IMG/VR virus record: IMGVR_UViG_3300031884_000002
Location: 124,001-188,000 of that record
Length of the DNA stretch: 64,000 nt
Strand: one strand, 5' to 3'
The notes beneath the pieces were generated by a model. The model saw nothing but the letters and a program-made list of their open reading frames with translations, was not told the DNA's origin and did not search any database. This document shows, piece after piece, positions 3,183-43,337 of this stretch (the first letter of the stretch is position 1; every line of letters starts with the position of its first letter). The position numbers and the translations under genes are program-made.

Positions 3183-4049
3183 TTATTTATTGATATAATT
3201 TAAAAACTTTTCTCTATAATTTTTAATAAACTCTACATTTCCATTTTCAAGTTCATTTTTAATTTTAGAAATATTTATTTCAAAATCCATTAGTTTATAT
3301 GAATAATTATTTAATTTACAAAATTGTTCCATTGCTATTTTCTTAGTAATTACTGATGGGCTTGTATGTAATCTTAATGGTTTAATTTCTATAAGTTCAT
3401 TAGTATTTAAGATAAAATCCGGTCTAGTTGTCCGTGAAGTTCCTTTATAATCAATATATTCAGTAGAATATATTTTTAATTCGGCACTTTTCCATTTTAT
3501 ATTATTTTCATCCAAATATATCATATATGACAACTCTCTAAGGCTTCTAAAAAAATGTTTTTTATAATAACCTTTCCAACCTTGTCCAGAACCTTTAGGA
3601 GATGGTTTGCCGTACATAGGATTATTTTTACCGGAACTATTTTTAGATTTTTTCTTACTTGCTTCCAATTGTTTCTGGTCGGCAATTTCTTTTCCATATT
3701 TTTTAAACCAAATATCATAAACAGATTTTCCGTACATAGGATTATTTTTCCCCGATGTTACGTCGCTCATTTTTTTACGAAATCCGTCAGTTTTCCATAT
3801 AGAAATATCTCTATTTTTTAATATTTTTTCTATTGTTTTTTTAGAATGTTTTTTTCCATAAAACGGATTTCCCATTCCAATATATTGAACAGACCTTTTT
3901 TTCATATTACACATTCTACATATTTGTTGTTTTTTATCTGCAATATTACAATTATATTTATTAGAATGAAATATGTCAATATTACATAACGGACATTTTC
4001 GCATAAACTTTTCATTGACATTTAATTTATTCTGTGGTATTGTATTCAT
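3183..4049 (-). CDS. free-standing homing-type endonuclease (NUMOD3 repeats plus PD-(D/E)XK/TnsA-like domain)
   Basis: Repeated GKNNPMYGK; FRSLREL...RPDF...IEIKP; inverted relative to neighbours. Confidence 0.75.
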   Translation of the reverse strand: MNTIPQNKLNVNEKFMRKCPLCNIDIFHSNKYNCNIADKKQQICRMCNMKKRSVQYIGMGNPFYGKKHSKKTIEKILKNRDISIWKTDGFRKKMSDVTSGKNNPMYGKSVYDIWFKKYGKEIADQKQLEASKKKSKNSSGKNNPMYGKPSPKGSGQGWKGYYKKHFFRSLRELSYMIYLDENNIKWKSAELKIYSTEYIDYKGTSRTTRPDFILNTNELIEIKPLRLHTSPSVITKKIAMEQFCKLNNYSYKLMDFEINISKIKNELENGNVEFIKNYREKFLNYINK

Positions 4050-7455: not shown

Positions 7456-7530
7456 GGCTAATTAGTTTAACGGTAAAACAAGATATTCTAAACATCTTAG
7501 TCATCGGTTCAAATCCGATATTAGCCACCA
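7456..7530 (+). tRNA. amber suppressor tRNA (anticodon CUA)
   Basis: Cloverleaf: GGCTAAT/ATTAGCC acceptor stem, D arm GTTT-AACGGTA-AAAC, anticodon loop TT-CTA-AA (CTA at 7488-7490), T arm ATCGG-TTCAAAT-CCGAT, discriminator A, encoded CCA. Confidence 0.92.
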
Positions 7531-36307: not shown

Positions 36308-36568
36308 TTAATATTGCTTTTTTTTCAATGCTAAATATAAGGCATCTGTCCTATCAGACGTATTATTTAAGTTGGATATTAACTCATCTCGGGGTTCAGT
36401 ATCGATATAACCATAATAACTACCACTCCCCAATATAAGTAATACATTATCATATATTTGAATATCGGGACATGCAGAACTAGTATAAGTAAACGTAGAT
36501 TTTTTTATTAAATCTTCATAATATTTAACTCTATCATACCAAAACTCAAACTTAGGCGTAATATTCAT
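36308..36568 (-). CDS. hypothetical protein
   Basis: 86-aa ORF. Confidence 0.5.
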   Translation of the reverse strand: MNITPKFEFWYDRVKYYEDLIKKSTFTYTSSACPDIQIYDNVLLILGSGSYYGYIDTEPRDELISNLNNTSDRTDALYLALKKKQY

Positions 36569-37311
36569 AATTTTATATTATCAAATACTTCTCCACAATT
36601 TTCTCTAATAACCAATGATGCTCTATGGTCGTATGGTGTATTATCTCTATTTAATATAATCAATTTACAGGTATCGGATACTTCTTCTAACAATCCTGCG
36701 GCGGGTTGAACTTGAAGGCTAGACCCTATGGCTAATACTACATCTGCCAATTTTAATTGTTTCATGGACTCTTCAAATGTTTCATCATTTAACCATTCGT
36801 CAAATAACACCGTGTTAGGACGAATAATACCACCACATTCACAAATAGGAATGTCAGTAGTTTCCATTACTTTATTAAAATATTCAACCGTATATCTGGC
36901 TCCACATGCACTGGCACATTTGAATACGGAATAATTTCCATGTAATTCCAATACATTAGTATTTCCAGCAAGATTATGTAAATTATCAATATTTTGAGTT
37001 ACAACCGCTTTAAGTTTTCCTACCTTCTCAAGATTAGATAGAAACAAATGAGACCGATTTGGTTTTTTATCTAATAATACATTCATTCTGGTTTTAAAAA
37101 ACTTAAAAAACATAGGTTTGTTTTTTCTTTCTCTTAAAAATCTGCCGCTTAATATTTGTTCGGGAGAAAGACCATCGAAATCTTTCATATATAAACCACC
37201 CGAAGAACGAAAATCAGGTATATTGGATTCGGTTGATATACCTGCACCGGTAAATGCTACTATATACTTAGCATTATTTATATATTCTTGTAATTGTTCT
37301 ATATTATTCAT
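36565..37311 (-). CDS. cobB: Sir2-family NAD-dependent protein deacylase
   Basis: FTGAGISTESNIPDFRS, TQNIDNLH, ELHG, Cys4 zinc site, GSSLQVQPAA. Confidence 0.93.
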   Translation of the reverse strand: MNNIEQLQEYINNAKYIVAFTGAGISTESNIPDFRSSGGLYMKDFDGLSPEQILSGRFLRERKNKPMFFKFFKTRMNVLLDKKPNRSHLFLSNLEKVGKLKAVVTQNIDNLHNLAGNTNVLELHGNYSVFKCASACGARYTVEYFNKVMETTDIPICECGGIIRPNTVLFDEWLNDETFEESMKQLKLADVVLAIGSSLQVQPAAGLLEEVSDTCKLIILNRDNTPYDHRASLVIRENCGEVFDNIKL

Positions 37312-37900: not shown

Positions 37901-39241
37901 TTATTTCATCGGGACAAGCTTCGGGAGGCTTATTTTCTTTAATTTTGGAAGCACAATTGCCGCTTGTCTAGCTATTTCAGGAACATGTTTATCCAATATA
38001 GAATGAAATTGTTTATCCATCTCTTCAACTGAAAATTTAGTAGTATTTTCAATTCGTAATTTTTCAGCTTTATCCAATATATCTTGATTATAATTAAAGA
38101 AATAAGATTTCATTTTTTCAGCCGCTTTATTATAATCAACCACGAACCATTGACTCTCTTTAACAAACCAATCATTTACTACTTCAGCCGGAACTTGTTG
38201 AAGAGTTCCTTCAAAAAAATCAGAATGTTCTGGATTCATATAATCTAAATGACCAGACCAATTTGGTAGAATAGTAGGTTTACCCAATACAGTTCCGGTT
38301 AATCCAGACATACCCCAACTTTCACCGTGACTAAAACTAACAAATACTTTAATTTTATCAGAATTAACCAATGCATTCATTTCAGAATCGGTCAAATCTC
38401 CATAAAACAAATAAACATTAGGAAGTTTAGCATTGGGAAGATTGTGTTTTACCATACTGGTAATATCATTTAATTTATTTACACAATCATGTCTATCTAC
38501 CACTCCTATCTGAGCACCATTCACCTTAAGTATTAAACATGGTGGATTTTCAATTCCGGCGAAGGCTCGAAGAAATGTCTCAATTAATCTACCAGTATCT
38601 TTTCTATCAGAATTACCATTTCCCGACCACATTCCACTATAATAGAAAGCAAATGTTTCTGGTATTTTTACCAATTCTTCTTCAATCGAAGGAAGTTTTT
38701 CATTGGTCTTTTTATAAATAGAAGTATTTATTCCCCATGGCAATACTTCGATTGATTTATTAAATTTCAATGGTTCTTGAGTTCCATTTGGGTTTTTCTT
38801 AACATATTCGGTTTTAAGTGCAACCTCTTTATTAAAATTAGACATAACTATACTCAAGTTAAATCTATTCATTCCCTCAATAAATTGAGGGCTTAATGCA
38901 GAGTTTTCAGTAAGAGCAGAAATACCAATGTTGTAATTTCCATGTGGTTGCCATTCGTTGGGAATACTCACATGAAAATATATGTCTGGTTTTTTATTTA
39001 TATTACCTCTAACAATTAAAGATAATAATTCTTTAGTTTCTGGGTCTTGTGCCAAATCTTCTATACTACGTTGGCCCGTTGCGCCCCAAGGGGTAAGAAC
39101 TATTCCCAATTGATAATCCTTCTTTTTACAATATCGCAAAAGAGATTTACCTATTTCTAATGAATATCTACCATATCCCGACGCAGTTTGCAATGCAGAT
39201 TGGTAAATTACTAATGGTTTATTATTTAATATGTCAGTCAT
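37901..39241 (-). CDS. glycosyltransferase family 4
   Basis: SGYG, DRKD, SHGESWG, WSGHLDY motifs. Confidence 0.85.
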   Translation of the reverse strand: MTDILNNKPLVIYQSALQTASGYGRYSLEIGKSLLRYCKKKDYQLGIVLTPWGATGQRSIEDLAQDPETKELLSLIVRGNINKKPDIYFHVSIPNEWQPHGNYNIGISALTENSALSPQFIEGMNRFNLSIVMSNFNKEVALKTEYVKKNPNGTQEPLKFNKSIEVLPWGINTSIYKKTNEKLPSIEEELVKIPETFAFYYSGMWSGNGNSDRKDTGRLIETFLRAFAGIENPPCLILKVNGAQIGVVDRHDCVNKLNDITSMVKHNLPNAKLPNVYLFYGDLTDSEMNALVNSDKIKVFVSFSHGESWGMSGLTGTVLGKPTILPNWSGHLDYMNPEHSDFFEGTLQQVPAEVVNDWFVKESQWFVVDYNKAAEKMKSYFFNYNQDILDKAEKLRIENTTKFSVEEMDKQFHSILDKHVPEIARQAAIVLPKLKKISLPKLVPMK

Positions 39242-39804
39242 AAACTTTTCATCTTTTCTCGTATTTGTTCCTCATATGGTTTAATATGAGAAATATTTCC
39301 ACCGTGTTTTTTATACTCTTCGATAATATCAGAATTGGTTCGGGGAGGAATTGGTAATGTATTATTATGTGTTACGAATCCCTTAACATTAAGGTCAACT
39401 GCTCCAATAGATTCTTTGGTTATTGATATTATATTTTTATCATATTGTTTCGATAAATCAATTGCCGCATCTAATTTATCAATCGACTTAACTGATGGAA
39501 TTGGTTCTGGTTTAATATCAGTACTTCCAAATCCTTTTTCTGCTCGTTCGGTCTGTGATAATTCATCGACTAATTTAAACTCGTGAACAGTATATGCCGA
39601 AAATATAATTTGAGCCATTTTATCTCCAATATTAATTTTATATGGCTCTTTTCCAAGATTTATTAGAATAACTTTTATTTCTCCACGATAATCGCAGTTA
39701 TGTATTAAAAAATCATTACAAAAAAAATTATGATTATTCTCTACTGTTATATCATATGTCTTTTTTTTAACTTTACTTATTGATTTTATTGTTGATAATT
39801 TCAT
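39238..39804 (-). CDS. dut: split dUTPase, C-part: 36-aa C-intein plus dUTPase motifs III(end)-V
   Basis: MKLSTIKSI...TYDITVENNHNFFCNDFLIHN|CDYRGEI...GDKMAQ...RAEKGFGST. Confidence 0.9.
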   Translation of the reverse strand: MKLSTIKSISKVKKKTYDITVENNHNFFCNDFLIHNCDYRGEIKVILINLGKEPYKINIGDKMAQIIFSAYTVHEFKLVDELSQTERAEKGFGSTDIKPEPIPSVKSIDKLDAAIDLSKQYDKNIISITKESIGAVDLNVKGFVTHNNTLPIPPRTNSDIIEEYKKHGGNISHIKPYEEQIREKMKSL

Positions 39805-40675
39805 TTATTATAGTTTTTAATTCTGTTTTGGAATAACATACATAAAAGTCATTGTTATATTTTAATTTAGCCGCTAATGTTTTTTCTATTAAATTTTTAT
39901 CTGGAAACCCCTTCATCTCAATTACTATTCGTCTTCCTGTATTTAATATCAACTCAAAATCGGGTAAATATCTTCGCATTTTTCCTTCACAATCAATATA
40001 TTCTATCACATCGAAGTTTCTTCGCCAAGTTTTTATATTTTCATTAGAGTCGAATATTGTCATAGCCTCTAACTCCAATCCACTTGCATAAAAAATATTT
40101 TTATAATATCCAGTTTTAAAATGATTAGATACAAAATCCAATTCTCCAGATTTACATTTATCCGCCAATGTTTTGGATATTTTATTCCTCCATATTTCGA
40201 AATTATCTTCGTCTCTAAAATATTTAGTACACCCCCCTTCTTCTCCCCAATATTTATTATAATTTTGCTTCATAAACTCCGAATGCTTTTGTAAATATGG
40301 ATATATTTCTTTCGTCCTTCCAGTTAAGTGTTTTTTATTTTTCTCTCCAATTAACCTAACTCGGTCGTCAATTTCTTTAGTTAGACCAATATTCCAATTT
40401 TTATGACCTTCTTCATATGTTTTTTTAATTATTTTACTCTGTCGTTCTTTTAACTCTGTAGTCCATTTTGTCTTTCGAGAAGCATTAGTTTTATTTCTAT
40501 ATAATGGATTTTTCCAATTTTCCTCCATCATTTTACTTATTCTTTTCTGTTCTTCATCTGAAACGACTGGACCATATGTTTTTTTATAAACATCAACTGA
40601 TAATTTATGAGTTTTAATAATATGGTCTATTAATCTTCTATTTGTCGTATGTCCGCATATTTCACATTTTATCAT
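39773..40675 (-). CDS. free-standing endonuclease (C2H2 finger, TnsA-like PD-(D/E)XK) between the dUTPase halves
   Basis: CEICG...HIIKTH; YASGLE...RYLPDF...IEMKG. Confidence 0.78.
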   Translation of the reverse strand: MIKCEICGHTTNRRLIDHIIKTHKLSVDVYKKTYGPVVSDEEQKRISKMMEENWKNPLYRNKTNASRKTKWTTELKERQSKIIKKTYEEGHKNWNIGLTKEIDDRVRLIGEKNKKHLTGRTKEIYPYLQKHSEFMKQNYNKYWGEEGGCTKYFRDEDNFEIWRNKISKTLADKCKSGELDFVSNHFKTGYYKNIFYASGLELEAMTIFDSNENIKTWRRNFDVIEYIDCEGKMRRYLPDFELILNTGRRIVIEMKGFPDKNLIEKTLAAKLKYNNDFYVCYSKTELKTIINEIINNKINK

Positions 40676-40733
40676 AATATTTCCTTAGTAATCATTATCT
40701 ATGTATAAATAGCGATTACAAAGGGAAAATTCA

Positions 40734-41240
40734 TTAAAAGTGTAATATTTTTTCACCTAATTTTAGTTCGTCGGCACGTTTTATTCCAGTTTCGGTATAT
40801 ACTTGAGTACCCGGTGTTATTTCTATATAATCATCATCAGTTTCTATTGCTAATAATTCTTTATCTCCTAAAGATACTATAGCAGATACAAAATCTCGCT
40901 CCAATTCTAAATTTTCATTAACTGAATATACAATATCATTTATTCTCAATTCTTCTATAAATTTTTGACCCTTTTCAGTCTTAATAGTACAATCCCCCGA
41001 AAAACAATCTATCGTGCCACCTAACACATCAATCCCATTTTTAAAAGATAATCCACTGCGGGGAGATATTCTTCCAAATAATCCCGTTGGAATTGCTATA
41101 TTTATACCAGTTTTAAACAGTTTTCGTTCCAATGGCTGGAGTTCATAACTTTCAATACTATATAAGTCATATCCTGCGGCATATGATGTTCCTCTAGTTG
41201 GAACAACCGCATTTACATCTGTCTTTTTAAGTTCAATCAT
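40734..41240 (-). CDS. dut: split dUTPase, N-part: dUTPase motifs I-III plus 90-aa N-intein
   Basis: AAGYDL, PRSGLS, GGTID|CFSGDCTI...RADELKLGEKI; stop TAA; ATG 41240 follows a TTGAAT/TATACT promoter. Confidence 0.9.
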   Translation of the reverse strand: MIELKKTDVNAVVPTRGTSYAAGYDLYSIESYELQPLERKLFKTGINIAIPTGLFGRISPRSGLSFKNGIDVLGGTIDCFSGDCTIKTEKGQKFIEELRINDIVYSVNENLELERDFVSAIVSLGDKELLAIETDDDYIEITPGTQVYTETGIKRADELKLGEKILHF

Positions 41241-41272
41241 ATTCACATAGTATAACCATTTTGTGAAAACAT

Positions 41273-42289
41273 TCAACTTTTTATAGAATGTGTCTCATTT
41301 TTAATACTTTCTATTTTAGATTTCATTTCATCTCTATCAATTTTGGGTATTTCAAATCCAACTTGTTCTCTGGTTGTGATATTACCAATATAATCTTTAA
41401 TTGAAAATACTCCAAATGACTTTGGTTTAACCCAATTAGAAAATACAAACTCCATAGTAGTAATAAACTCTTTACCCATTCTTTTTTCCGAGAGACCCGT
41501 TGAACTTAACATCCATTCTCTTCCTTCTTTTCCATAATGTTCTCTGGTTTTATGGGGTGTCATATACCAATACATAAATCCAACTCCAAAATCTTCCCAT
41601 CTTGTCATTTCATCAAATATGTAAGGAGTAGGAGGGCTTCCTTGAACGTAACGGGCTACTGGATATACTGGATACGCCCATCGTCCACATTTCTTAACTT
41701 TACCATCACTATTACTTCCCCAATTTCCGGTAAACTCAATTTGATTTCCATTATCATCCACGAAGTTCATCTGGTCCTGAAGACCTCCAGTTACAGTTGC
41801 AATAATAGGAGTTCCTGCCATTATACTTTCAGCCGTTGATAATCCGAATCCTTCACTTGAAGACGCACACACAGTAACATCAACGCTATTATATAACAAG
41901 TTCAATTCTTCGGGCGAAACCTTACCGGGAGAAAATATAATATTGTAATTAGGACATAATGCTTCTTTTACTGCAATATTATTAGTTCCGGCATCTAAAA
42001 TTATTTCCGAGTGAATAATAAACAAACACTTGGATGCTTCTTCTTTAGTTAAACTGTCACAAAATTGTCTATATGCTAGAATTGCATTGCTTATTCGTTT
42101 TCGGTTAATATTTCTAGAATTTAAAAATAGAACGAAATTATAATCTTTTCCTTGAAATAATTTACGTTTAAACTCTATTAACTTTGGATCGGTTGCCGCT
42201 ACCGGATGAAAAGTTTCCGATGAAATCCCATGTGGGACATGGTGAATAAGCTTCTTATTTATAATTTTCCCATTTATTTTATATGACAT
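41273..42289 (-). CDS. glycosyltransferase family 4, C-terminal part
   Basis: Begins at VPHGI; NSRNINRK, SSEGFGL, TGGLQDQ. Confidence 0.85.
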   Translation of the reverse strand: MSYKINGKIINKKLIHHVPHGISSETFHPVAATDPKLIEFKRKLFQGKDYNFVLFLNSRNINRKRISNAILAYRQFCDSLTKEEASKCLFIIHSEIILDAGTNNIAVKEALCPNYNIIFSPGKVSPEELNLLYNSVDVTVCASSSEGFGLSTAESIMAGTPIIATVTGGLQDQMNFVDDNGNQIEFTGNWGSNSDGKVKKCGRWAYPVYPVARYVQGSPPTPYIFDEMTRWEDFGVGFMYWYMTPHKTREHYGKEGREWMLSSTGLSEKRMGKEFITTMEFVFSNWVKPKSFGVFSIKDYIGNITTREQVGFEIPKIDRDEMKSKIESIKNETHSIKS

Positions 42290-42491: not shown

Positions 42492-42700
42492 AATTTATTT
42501 ATAAATGTTCTATGTTCTTTTAATGTTATAATCTTTCCATTTCCTTTATCTAAAGTTTCTATATGGGTATAATTTATATTTTCGAGTGCTATTTTCACTA
42601 ACCATTTCGACATATTATATGCATTTTCATCACAGTATTTTTTAATTCTATCAAAATCTTCTTTATCTATATTCACTACTCTTTTTTCACTTGTTTTCAT
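42488..42700 (-). CDS. ribbon-helix-helix-like protein
   Basis: KRVVNIDKEDFDRIKKYCDENAYNMSKWL. Confidence 0.55.
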   Translation of the reverse strand: MKTSEKRVVNIDKEDFDRIKKYCDENAYNMSKWLVKIALENINYTHIETLDKGNGKIITLKEHRTFINKL

Positions 42701-43337
42701 AATATTCATTTATAATAGATTGAAGATGTTCCGTCTTATTTCCTATACTTGAATCTACTTTTTTAATTTTTTTAAGTTTATCATCTATCCTATAAAATTC
42801 ACATTTTGTATTTTCCAAAATATAATTTTGACGTATTATATCTTTTATTTTTGATTTTGTTTTATTGTGATGGGACTCATCCCATTCAATAATTACTTTT
42901 AGAGTTGGTTCATAATAATCCAAAAAATATCTATATATTCTATATTCTCCATTATTTTTTCCATGTCTTCCATTCCATTTTAGTTTTTCATTTAAGTAAT
43001 TAAAAAAATCACATGCTCTGGAATTTACAGATACTCTCGTTTTTCCATTCAATACATTTCGTATCATCACTTGTCTATGTTTCTCTTTATATTCCGGCGT
43101 ATTCATAGAATCTACCCAAATTTTTGATTTTTTATGTCCGGTTGCTATATTTTTTCTCCATTCATCCGAAAATGGAGGTCGTGGCTTGCCTTTCAATTTT
43201 TTTGATTGTGATATTAATTTACATTCCCAACATTCTCGTTTAATATTGCGATTAGCGTAATATGAACCTCGTGTTTTATAATATCTTATTTTATTACATG
43301 TAGGACAATTATCAAAATATTTTATTTCTTCACTCAT
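42687..43337 (-). CDS. free-standing endonuclease (Vsr/DUF559-like)
   Basis: CPTC; YFLDYY...IIEWDESHH...KDIIRQ...CEFYRI. Confidence 0.75.
   Translation of the reverse strand: MSEEIKYFDNCPTCNKIRYYKTRGSYYANRNIKRECWECKLISQSKKLKGKPRPPFSDEWRKNIATGHKKSKIWVDSMNTPEYKEKHRQVMIRNVLNGKTRVSVNSRACDFFNYLNEKLKWNGRHGKNNGEYRIYRYFLDYYEPTLKVIIEWDESHHNKTKSKIKDIIRQNYILENTKCEFYRIDDKLKKIKKVDSSIGNKTEHLQSIINEYYENK

Follow-up and report, generated by a model that had tools for sequence, protein, structure and literature searches.

A dUTPase gene fractured by a predicted split intein and a free-standing endonuclease gene in a metagenomic viral sequence

Introduction

How can a dUTPase be made from a gene that is interrupted inside its catalytic motif III by a stop codon, an endonuclease open reading frame (ORF) and a second start codon? 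This question is raised by a locus of a giant phage, the viral record IMGVR_UViG_3300031884_000002 (353.8 kb, ~29% G+C), within a stretch of 64,000 nucleotides (nt; positions 124,001 to 188,000 of that record) that we analyzed as a whole and call the window. The window carries phage-like, tightly packed genes and a family B DNA polymerase gene. On its minus strand, three ORFs located between two glycosyltransferase-like genes constitute the locus, namely the two halves of the dUTPase gene (N-gene and C-gene) and, between them, the gene of a predicted homing endonuclease. An earlier note, made from the sequence alone, had interpreted these ORFs as a dUTPase gene fractured by a naturally split intein, in the layout known from the gp41-1, NrdJ-1 and IMPDH-1 split inteins. 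Our analysis confirms the fractured gene, which recurs far beyond chance, and we consider it quite probable, from sequence considerations, that its two polypeptides are joined post-translationally by protein trans-splicing.

A dUTPase gene divided between two open reading frames

The features of the locus, with their positions in the window, are the following.

41240-40737, minus strand: gene 1 (N-gene), 168 amino acids (aa), N part of the dUTPase and N-intein; stop TAA, then an in-frame TGA.
41007-41240, minus strand: N-extein, dUTPase residues 1-78, with motifs I and II and motif III through the catalytic Asp (...GGTID).
40737-41006, minus strand: N-intein, 90 aa, acidic; block A CFSGD; block B TPGT where inteins have TxxH.
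40731-40736, minus strand: double stop TAA TGA, in frame, at the end of the N-gene, as read from the sequence.
40680-40728, minus strand: conserved hairpin in the 5' untranslated region (UTR) of the endonuclease gene; its 3' arm pairs with the Shine-Dalgarno sequence AAGGA.
39773-40675, minus strand: gene 2, predicted free-standing homing endonuclease, 300 aa, with a C2H2-like finger and a PD-(D/E)xK nuclease.
39773-39804, minus strand: 32 nt shared by the end of the endonuclease ORF and the beginning of the C-gene; the C-gene ATG lies inside the endonuclease ORF.
39804-39238, minus strand: gene 3 (C-gene), 188 aa, C-intein, remainder of the dUTPase and tail.
39697-39804, minus strand: C-intein, 36 aa, basic; blocks F and G canonical (YDITVENNHNFF...LIHN).
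39514-39696, minus strand: C-extein, dUTPase part, from the +1 Cys onward; it completes motif III (CDYRGE) and carries motif IV and motif V (GFGST).
39238-39513, minus strand: C-terminal extension of ~90 aa after motif V, with the stop codon; no family match.

Residues 11-82 of the N-gene correspond to positions 3-74 of the Pfam dUTPase family (E 1.3e-14), and the C-gene corresponds to positions 68-128 (E 7.8e-14). Against the dUTPases of the PDB, the N-extein gave E 3e-19, with an alignment ending at the ID|C junction, and the C-gene gave E 3e-12. The five motifs of the trimeric dUTPases (PF00692) are present across the two exteins, including the catalytic Asp and GFGST, and the exteins abut in the dUTPase profile inside motif III, directly after the catalytic Asp. 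The junctions read GGTID|CFSGD in the N-gene and LIHN|CDYRGE in the C-gene, with GGTID-CDYRGE as the predicted spliced junction. The host protein is encoded in two ORFs that add up to one complete homolog and is broken at a conserved site. Also, the stop after the N-intein and the separate Met start of the C-gene are kept in all related loci examined, and the endonuclease ORF between the halves has both the 5' hairpin and the 3' overlap with the C-gene.

Most of what the earlier note had described was borne out. The dUTPase runs to GGTID and continues with CFSGD into a 90-aa acidic N-intein ending at a TAA stop (41006-40737), with agreement in coordinates, sequence and charge (-10). The separate 300-aa endonuclease ORF was found between the halves at 40675-39773 on the minus strand. 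The C-gene begins with a 36-aa basic C-intein ending in IHN (39804-39697), followed by CDYRGE, as supported by matches to the intein_Cterm and dUTPase families and by a charge of +3. Each sequence-level requirement of the fractured-gene layout of gp41-1, NrdJ-1 and IMPDH-1 is present, and the same layout was found in independent contigs.

The ~90-aa tail of the C-extein is kept in one relative (locus L006), is short or different in L003, L005 and L007, and is absent in L010, L012 and L013.

The two halves as parts of an intein

Residues 79-168 of the N-gene gave by themselves weak Hint and intein matches. A profile built from six relatives matched solved inteins over the full length of the N-intein (Spl DnaX, 2e-5; Ssp DnaB, 1.5e-4; Npu DnaE, ~2e-3). 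The AlphaFold2 (AF2) model of the N-intein, based on a 35-sequence alignment, reached a predicted local distance difference test (pLDDT) score of 88.7, and its top 40 Foldseek matches in the PDB were all inteins or Hint domains, with template modelling (TM) scores of 0.60-0.67. These matches included the Npu DnaE N-fragment (TM 0.67/0.61, 24% identity), gp41-1 (TM 0.60, 20% identity) and NrdJ-1 (TM 0.51, 25% identity). As modelled, the N-terminal splicing region adopts a Hint fold.

Residues 16-37 of the C-gene matched the NCBIfam family intein_Cterm with 26.1 bits (cut-off 15.6). The family profile of the C-intein aligned end to end, Met to Met, with the gp41-1 C-intein (E 3.4e-6), and also matched Spl DnaX (9e-8). 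Because the C-half aligns with gp41-1 from Met to Met, the split point lies at the same structural position as in known phage split inteins. The two halves are oppositely charged, with a net charge and isoelectric point of -10 and 4.4 for the N-intein and of +3 and 9.4 for the C-intein.

The residues expected to take part in splicing are largely conserved. Cys1, the block A nucleophile, is invariant in 35 aligned N-inteins. The ten C-halves examined all have the Asp of block F, the penultimate His and the terminal Asn, and the block F His is replaced only in L016, by Asn. At position +1 there is a Cys, except in L015, where it is Ser, also a nucleophile. In the window, blocks F and G read YDITVENNHNFF...LIHN|C, and block A is canonical as well. 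Protein splicing activity is predicted for the dUTPase intein, with indirect support from the dN/dS of its halves (see below).

An interrupted gene with an endonuclease ORF in its middle could also be joined in RNA, through a group I or group II intron carrying the endonuclease or through recoding, a contiguous intein then being translated. Phage homing endonucleases do often reside in group I introns, and the window contains a tRNA with a CUA anticodon. However, no Rfam match was obtained over 38800-41600, even at E<=1, the stop of the N-gene is TAA TGA and not TAG, and the conserved Met of the C-gene aligns with the start of the gp41-1 C-intein. Moreover, in relatives without the endonuclease only 48-107 nt lie between the halves, which is too short for a self-splicing intron. 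We regard joining in RNA as the least probable of the explanations considered, with very little chance of being correct.

Recurrence of the split dUTPase intein and selection on it

The tripartite layout was found at the same dUTPase site, always split, in 12 distinct metagenomic loci examined by hand. Its carriers are L003, L005 (a far more divergent dUTPase with an insertion), L007, L008 and L009 (one type), L010, L012, L013, L014 and L016. When IMG/VR was scanned with a pattern derived from the C-intein alignment, 170 relatives were retrieved, and dUTPase loci made up 40 of the best 80, which were examined. These 40 loci were distributed as follows.

Endonuclease of the same family between the halves: 30 of 40.
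No endonuclease, 107-nt spacer: 6 of 40.
N-gene cut off by the contig end: 4 of 40.
Contiguous intein: 0 of 40.

An exhaustive hidden Markov model search with the 90-aa N-intein against 1.84 billion representative proteins gave 72 matches. About 35 of them (clusters at 50% identity) are N-terminal dUTPase fragments, each ending no more than 13 residues from the end of the N-intein. No contiguous dUTPase intein occurred among these 72 representative matches or the 40 IMG/VR loci. A word-indexed protein search with the N-intein returned 4 clusters and understated the size of the family. Searches of 50,697 GenBank phage records gave no match, either by blastn with the 4.4-kb locus or by tblastn with the N-intein, and the pattern used found no relative among the 185,579 species genomes of GTDB.

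Two related sequences differ in detail. In L007 (2127-2242), the N-gene was called as 132 aa, with the first ~37 residues missing, whereas its equivalents in L008 and L009 are complete (169 aa); a frameshift or a difference in assembly is the probable cause. In protein P0051, a 93-aa fragment, the N-intein runs without a stop into ...DISIDVEADYRGKVLDMWP, which resembles dUTPase motif III, and this protein may be a degenerate or rearranged allele without C-intein.

Could the gene simply be decaying, a dUTPase that a mobile element has disrupted and that is being lost without making a functional product? Dispensability is common among phage dUTPases, and this one is interrupted at a catalytic motif. 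The coding sequences nevertheless argue strongly for maintenance, as exteins, intein halves and endonuclease are all open, dozens of independent contigs have the layout, and the ratio of non-synonymous to synonymous substitution rates (dN/dS) stays at 0.04-0.3 between lineages whose synonymous divergence is saturated. The values for the intein halves (0.05-0.20) indicate strong purifying selection, are as low as those of the flanking genes (~0.07 in close pairs) and hold in the comparison with the endonuclease-less L006; those of the endonuclease are 0.23-0.30. Decay of the dUTPase gene is in our opinion highly improbable.

Identity between lineages is 70% for the N-intein and 78-86% for the C-intein, against 30-54% for the exteins, 45-56% for the flanking genes and 52-55% for the endonuclease. 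Between the window and its closest relative, L006, the synonymous divergence is 0.43-0.56 in the intein and 1.0-1.3 in exteins and flanks, over 126 codons only. The lower synonymous divergence of the intein is suggestive of more recent exchange.

Proposed trans-splicing and the missing block B histidine

If the dUTPase is restored by trans-splicing, the acidic N-intein and the basic C-intein would associate into a Hint domain, Cys1 would attack the Asp(-1)-Cys1 bond, the N-extein would be taken over by the +1 Cys, and cyclisation of the terminal Asn would release the intein. This would yield a dUTPase of 230 aa in which motif III again reads through, as GGTID-CDYRGE.

One conserved residue of this chemistry is missing. 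When aligned with Ssp DnaB and Spl DnaX, the block B motif TxxH of class 1 inteins corresponds to TPGT, in which the Thr is kept and the His position is occupied by Thr. Every member of the dUTPase family examined has Thr or Ser at this position, never His (26 full-length representatives plus additional fragments, 28 dUTPase rows of alignment A7, and 36 IMG/VR loci). Related N-inteins from DnaE, helicase, ribonucleotide reductase (RNR) and other hosts, obtained in the same search, have the His. The block B His is the single most conserved residue of inteins (PMC6333167). Natural inteins without it form a very small subset, in which the -1 extein residue can compensate, and a few of them do splice (PMC6333167). 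In the dUTPase family, the -1 residue is always the catalytic Asp of the dUTPase. Because the block B His is missing, the first splicing step would have to be activated differently, and fast chemistry of the gp41-1 type cannot be assumed. The missing His does not show that the intein is inactive.

The same missing His makes non-covalent assembly the only serious rival of trans-splicing. The intein halves may no longer splice and may instead act as a high-affinity heterodimerisation module holding the dUTPase fragments together, as for the split NrdA of phage Aeh1. In favour of this explanation, the His was lost in the whole dUTPase intein family, and a fractured RNR assembled without splicing is a precedent (PMC3045599). 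On the other hand, Cys1, the terminal Asn, the penultimate His, the block F Asp and the +1 Cys or Ser are kept down to ~35% identity, and docking would need none of them. Also, the enzyme would hardly tolerate a 126-aa Hint domain remaining inside motif III of its active site, right after the catalytic Asp, and a few natural inteins do splice without the His. Non-covalent assembly thus appears unlikely to us, and we retain trans-splicing as the preferred explanation.

Several points nevertheless speak against trans-splicing or against parts of the scheme. The splicing reaction is itself deduced from sequence. Without the block B His, its first step needs compensation and could be slow or inefficient. 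By itself, the N-intein does not reach the curated cut-off of either Pfam or NCBIfam. For the endonuclease, the Foldseek E-values are weak (3.5e-3). Finally, the promoter-like motif that the earlier note had assigned to the endonuclease could not be upheld: the sigma-70-like sequence TTGTAA-16-GATAAT (40721-40694, 9/12) is no better than shuffled sequence, with 21 sites against 15.9 +/- 4 in shuffles of this AT-rich DNA.

We also propose, much more tentatively, that an ancient, obligately split lineage may have dispensed with the block B His since the catalytic Asp at -1, or the Thr or Ser replacing the His, activates the scissile bond. This extein-assisted chemistry would have co-evolved with one active site, and the intein would be paired with an undescribed endonuclease family that also moves alone beside intact dUTPase genes. 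As the -1 residue is always Asp, activation of the N-S acyl shift is directly testable in this family, which offers many natural sequences that work, as judged by selection, without the most conserved histidine of inteins.

The predicted endonuclease and its putative control elements

The predicted 300-aa homing endonuclease sits at the canonical endonuclease or split site of the intein. It begins with a C2H2-like finger formed by C4, C7, H18 and H23 (C-x2-C...H-x4-H), continues with a helical middle part and ends with a nuclease domain (residues ~187-300, 39776-40117 in the window). In an alignment of 11 members (A2), the finger signature is conserved, and E201, P238-D239, E253 and K255 are invariant. 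The AF2 model has a mean pLDDT of 79, exceeding 90 in both end domains, and displays a small finger of beta-hairpin and helix, a helical middle and an alpha-beta nuclease core (H199-210, then four strands). The best Foldseek matches of this core were TnsA (E 3.5e-3, probability 1.0), Bax1, VRR-NUC and NucS. This restriction-endonuclease-like core with E...D...(D/E)xK places the modelled protein in the PD-(D/E)xK superfamily, and DNA cleavage is predicted.

Sequence searches yielded a match to PHROG 218 (E 2e-11), a weak match to Pfam RE_endonuc and, for two homologs, a match to Pfam Phage_endo_I. By tblastn against the GenBank phages (50,697 records), no match was found for the full-length endonuclease; the nuclease domain alone has 30-34% identity over ~100 aa to gp4 of T4-like phages. 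Against PDB sequences, phmmer and profile searches gave nothing useful, and the fold search alone was informative. The family is small, with 12 clusters in a word-indexed search, none of them named.

The two nuclease types known from fractured genes were both considered and rejected. For EDxHD (Vsr-like), neither 3R3P nor Vsr was matched by phmmer, by profile or within the Foldseek top 50, and the conserved His is absent. For GIY-YIG, there was no match in Pfam, NCBIfam or PHROG, and the predicted fold is PD-(D/E)xK. Because it belongs neither to the Vsr-like/EDxHD type nor to GIY-YIG, the endonuclease as modelled is a third nuclease type in fractured genes.

A ribonucleotide reductase gene fractured by a split intein was also encountered in L051 (798-3975; also in L052 and L063), with a 349-aa ORF between the halves. 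The C-terminal nuclease domain of this ORF (SWEL...YLPDF...LEIKG) is distantly related to that of the dUTPase-locus endonuclease, and its N-terminus is different.

The hairpin directly upstream of the endonuclease start, with the Shine-Dalgarno sequence in its 3' arm, has a folding energy of -14.7 kcal/mol (z -4.1). Hairpins of the same geometry and different stem sequence occur in L003, L005, L011, L013 and L016 (z -2.4 to -4.2). With RNAalifold, the consensus of the endonuclease 5' UTRs was weak (-1.5 kcal/mol) owing to stems that are out of register with one another, and single-sequence folds were clearer. Hairpins were reported at 15/16 fractured-gene endonucleases and linked to translational attenuation (Dassa et al., 2009, PMC2677866). 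The conserved hairpin sequestering the ribosome-binding site would be the real control element, with a putative function: it would probably throttle translation of the endonuclease. At the other end of the ORF, the endonuclease 3' end would supply the start codon of the C-gene; overlaps of endonuclease and C-gene in fractured genes are typically 6-69 bp (PMC2677866). A T4 late-promoter box, TATAAATA, was noticed solely on the opposite strand of the hairpin loop, and for this reason no late promoter is claimed.

The endonuclease presumably cuts dUTPase alleles that lack it, so that the cassette would spread among related phages. Both its activity and its target are predictions from sequence. 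The putative mobility is supported by an endonuclease located beside an intact dUTPase in L011 and by intein identities exceeding those of exteins and flanks.

Relatives with and without the endonuclease

L006 resembles the window closely, as flanks and N-extein are 86-95% identical, and its halves are only 48 nt apart (3294-3344), with no endonuclease. Two parts of the window locus align with the 48-nt spacer, namely the first ~27 nt past the stop of the N-gene and the final ~24 nt that the endonuclease ORF has ahead of the C-gene ATG. Most simply, the body of the endonuclease would have been deleted and the part needed for the C-gene start kept; we interpret this as a deletion because all outgroups carry the endonuclease. 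Further split loci without endonuclease are L015 (1330-1432, 103-nt spacer) and L038-L043 (107 nt).

In L011 (402-1759), the dUTPase is intact (145 aa) and has no intein; immediately downstream lies a 288-aa endonuclease of the same family, 48% identical and preceded by a homologous hairpin. Motif III of this dUTPase reads GICDSSYRGE.

In the published gene-breaking model, a free-standing endonuclease is followed by intein invasion and then by loss of the endonuclease, which leaves the gene permanently split (Dassa et al., 2009, PMC2677866). Taken together, the sequences of L006, L015, L038-L043 and L011 fit this model. These relatives would lay out its proposed stages, with the endonuclease beside an intact dUTPase, inside the split intein, and deleted with its 3' tail kept.

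Comparison with known systems

As hosts of split inteins, Dassa et al. (2009, PMC2677866) list gp41, IMPDH, DnaE, NrdA, NrdJ, ligase and terminase, and no publication combining a split intein with dUTPase was found in the literature searched. The earlier note had proposed a new split intein in a host protein not known for this layout. The second part stands, since dUTPase is absent from the published hosts; the first has to be modified, as the intein is a member of a sizeable metagenomic family and not a single intein. The architecture is known (Dassa et al., 2009). The dUTPase host, the insertion site, the His-less intein family and the endonuclease family were not found in the literature searched.

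The closest parallels are the fractured genes gp41-1 to gp41-8, NrdJ-1, IMPDH-1 and NrdA-2 (PMC2677866), which have the same order of N-extein and N-intein, endonuclease ORF, and C-intein and C-extein. They share with the dUTPase locus a C-intein of ~36 aa (its start aligned with that of gp41-1), opposite charges of the halves, the upstream hairpin, the overlap of endonuclease and C-gene (32 nt here, 6-69 bp there) and a phage or metagenomic origin, and our endonuclease-less variants resemble gp41-7. In contrast, the present locus has a dUTPase host, an insertion right after the motif III catalytic Asp, a TxxT/S block B, an endonuclease that is neither GIY-YIG nor Vsr-like, and only 20-25% identity to the gp41-1 and NrdJ-1 N-inteins.

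The Npu and Ssp DnaE inteins are likewise naturally split and of class 1 type; they have Cys at positions 1 and +1, and their N half is acidic whereas the C half, of ~36 aa, is basic. However, their halves are encoded far apart with no endonuclease, their block B His is present, and they belong to another host gene and lineage. Natural inteins without the block B His are also known from the Tko CDC21-1 type (PMC6333167), for which compensation or help from the -1 residue has been invoked. Those are contiguous and archaeal with Leu at -1, whereas the dUTPase family is split and viral, has Thr or Ser in place of the His, and invariably carries Asp at -1.

For the endonuclease, I-Bth0305I and the EDxHD family (PMC3239194) offer a similar modular plan, as they combine N-terminal DNA-binding modules with a C-terminal restriction-endonuclease-like nuclease of ~110 aa and are found inside fractured genes. 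The protein described here has E...PD...ExK without the conserved His, and a C2H2-like finger instead of NUMOD2 or helix-turn-helix modules. The nuclease domains of TnsA (Tn7) and of the T4 gp4 'head completion' protein (PHROG 218) are similar, but neither protein is a homing endonuclease, and both are without the finger and the helical N-terminal two thirds. Finally, the split nrdA of Aeh1 with mobE is also a phage nucleotide-metabolism gene with a free-standing endonuclease whose translation is under hairpin control; it has no intein and its fragments assemble non-covalently (PMC3045599).

Naturally split inteins are scarce, and methods for ligating, labelling and cyclising proteins and for delivering genes on dual vectors are built on them. 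With 20-25% identity to gp41-1, NrdJ-1 and Npu DnaE, the dUTPase family would be a credible source of orthogonal pairs. Orthogonality to known pairs, which the earlier note had suggested, is plausible because the intein sequence is distant from these engineering workhorses. For engineering, dozens of natural variants and a short C half of 36 aa are available. The predicted endonuclease, for its part, adds a third nuclease type to the fractured genes.

Surroundings of the locus

Taken with 36565-37311 (minus strand) and the flanking genes at 37901-39241 and 41273-42289, the dUTPase locus lies in a glycosyltransferase-like block with a Sir2-family gene near it. In L003, L005, L006 and L007, too, the split dUTPase is located between these two glycosyltransferase genes. 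A second copy of the dUTPase split intein was not found within the window. Three in-frame ORFs upstream of the DNA polymerase gene resembled another fractured gene but are distinct genes, encoding among others a SpoU methylase and a nuclease of the PD-(D/E)xK type.

A tRNA gene with a CUA anticodon, labelled tRNA-Pyl by ARAGORN, is located at 7456-7530 on the plus strand and is a possible amber suppressor. Among 75 long stop-to-stop frames of the window, 46 end with TAA, 28 with TGA and 1 with TAG, and no long frame broken by an in-frame TAG was seen in the window. About 1.4 kb upstream of the dUTPase locus, a 216-aa ORF (42687-43337, minus strand) has weak matches to DUF559, a Vsr-like endonuclease domain, and to a PvuRts1I-like N domain, and may encode a further free-standing nuclease.

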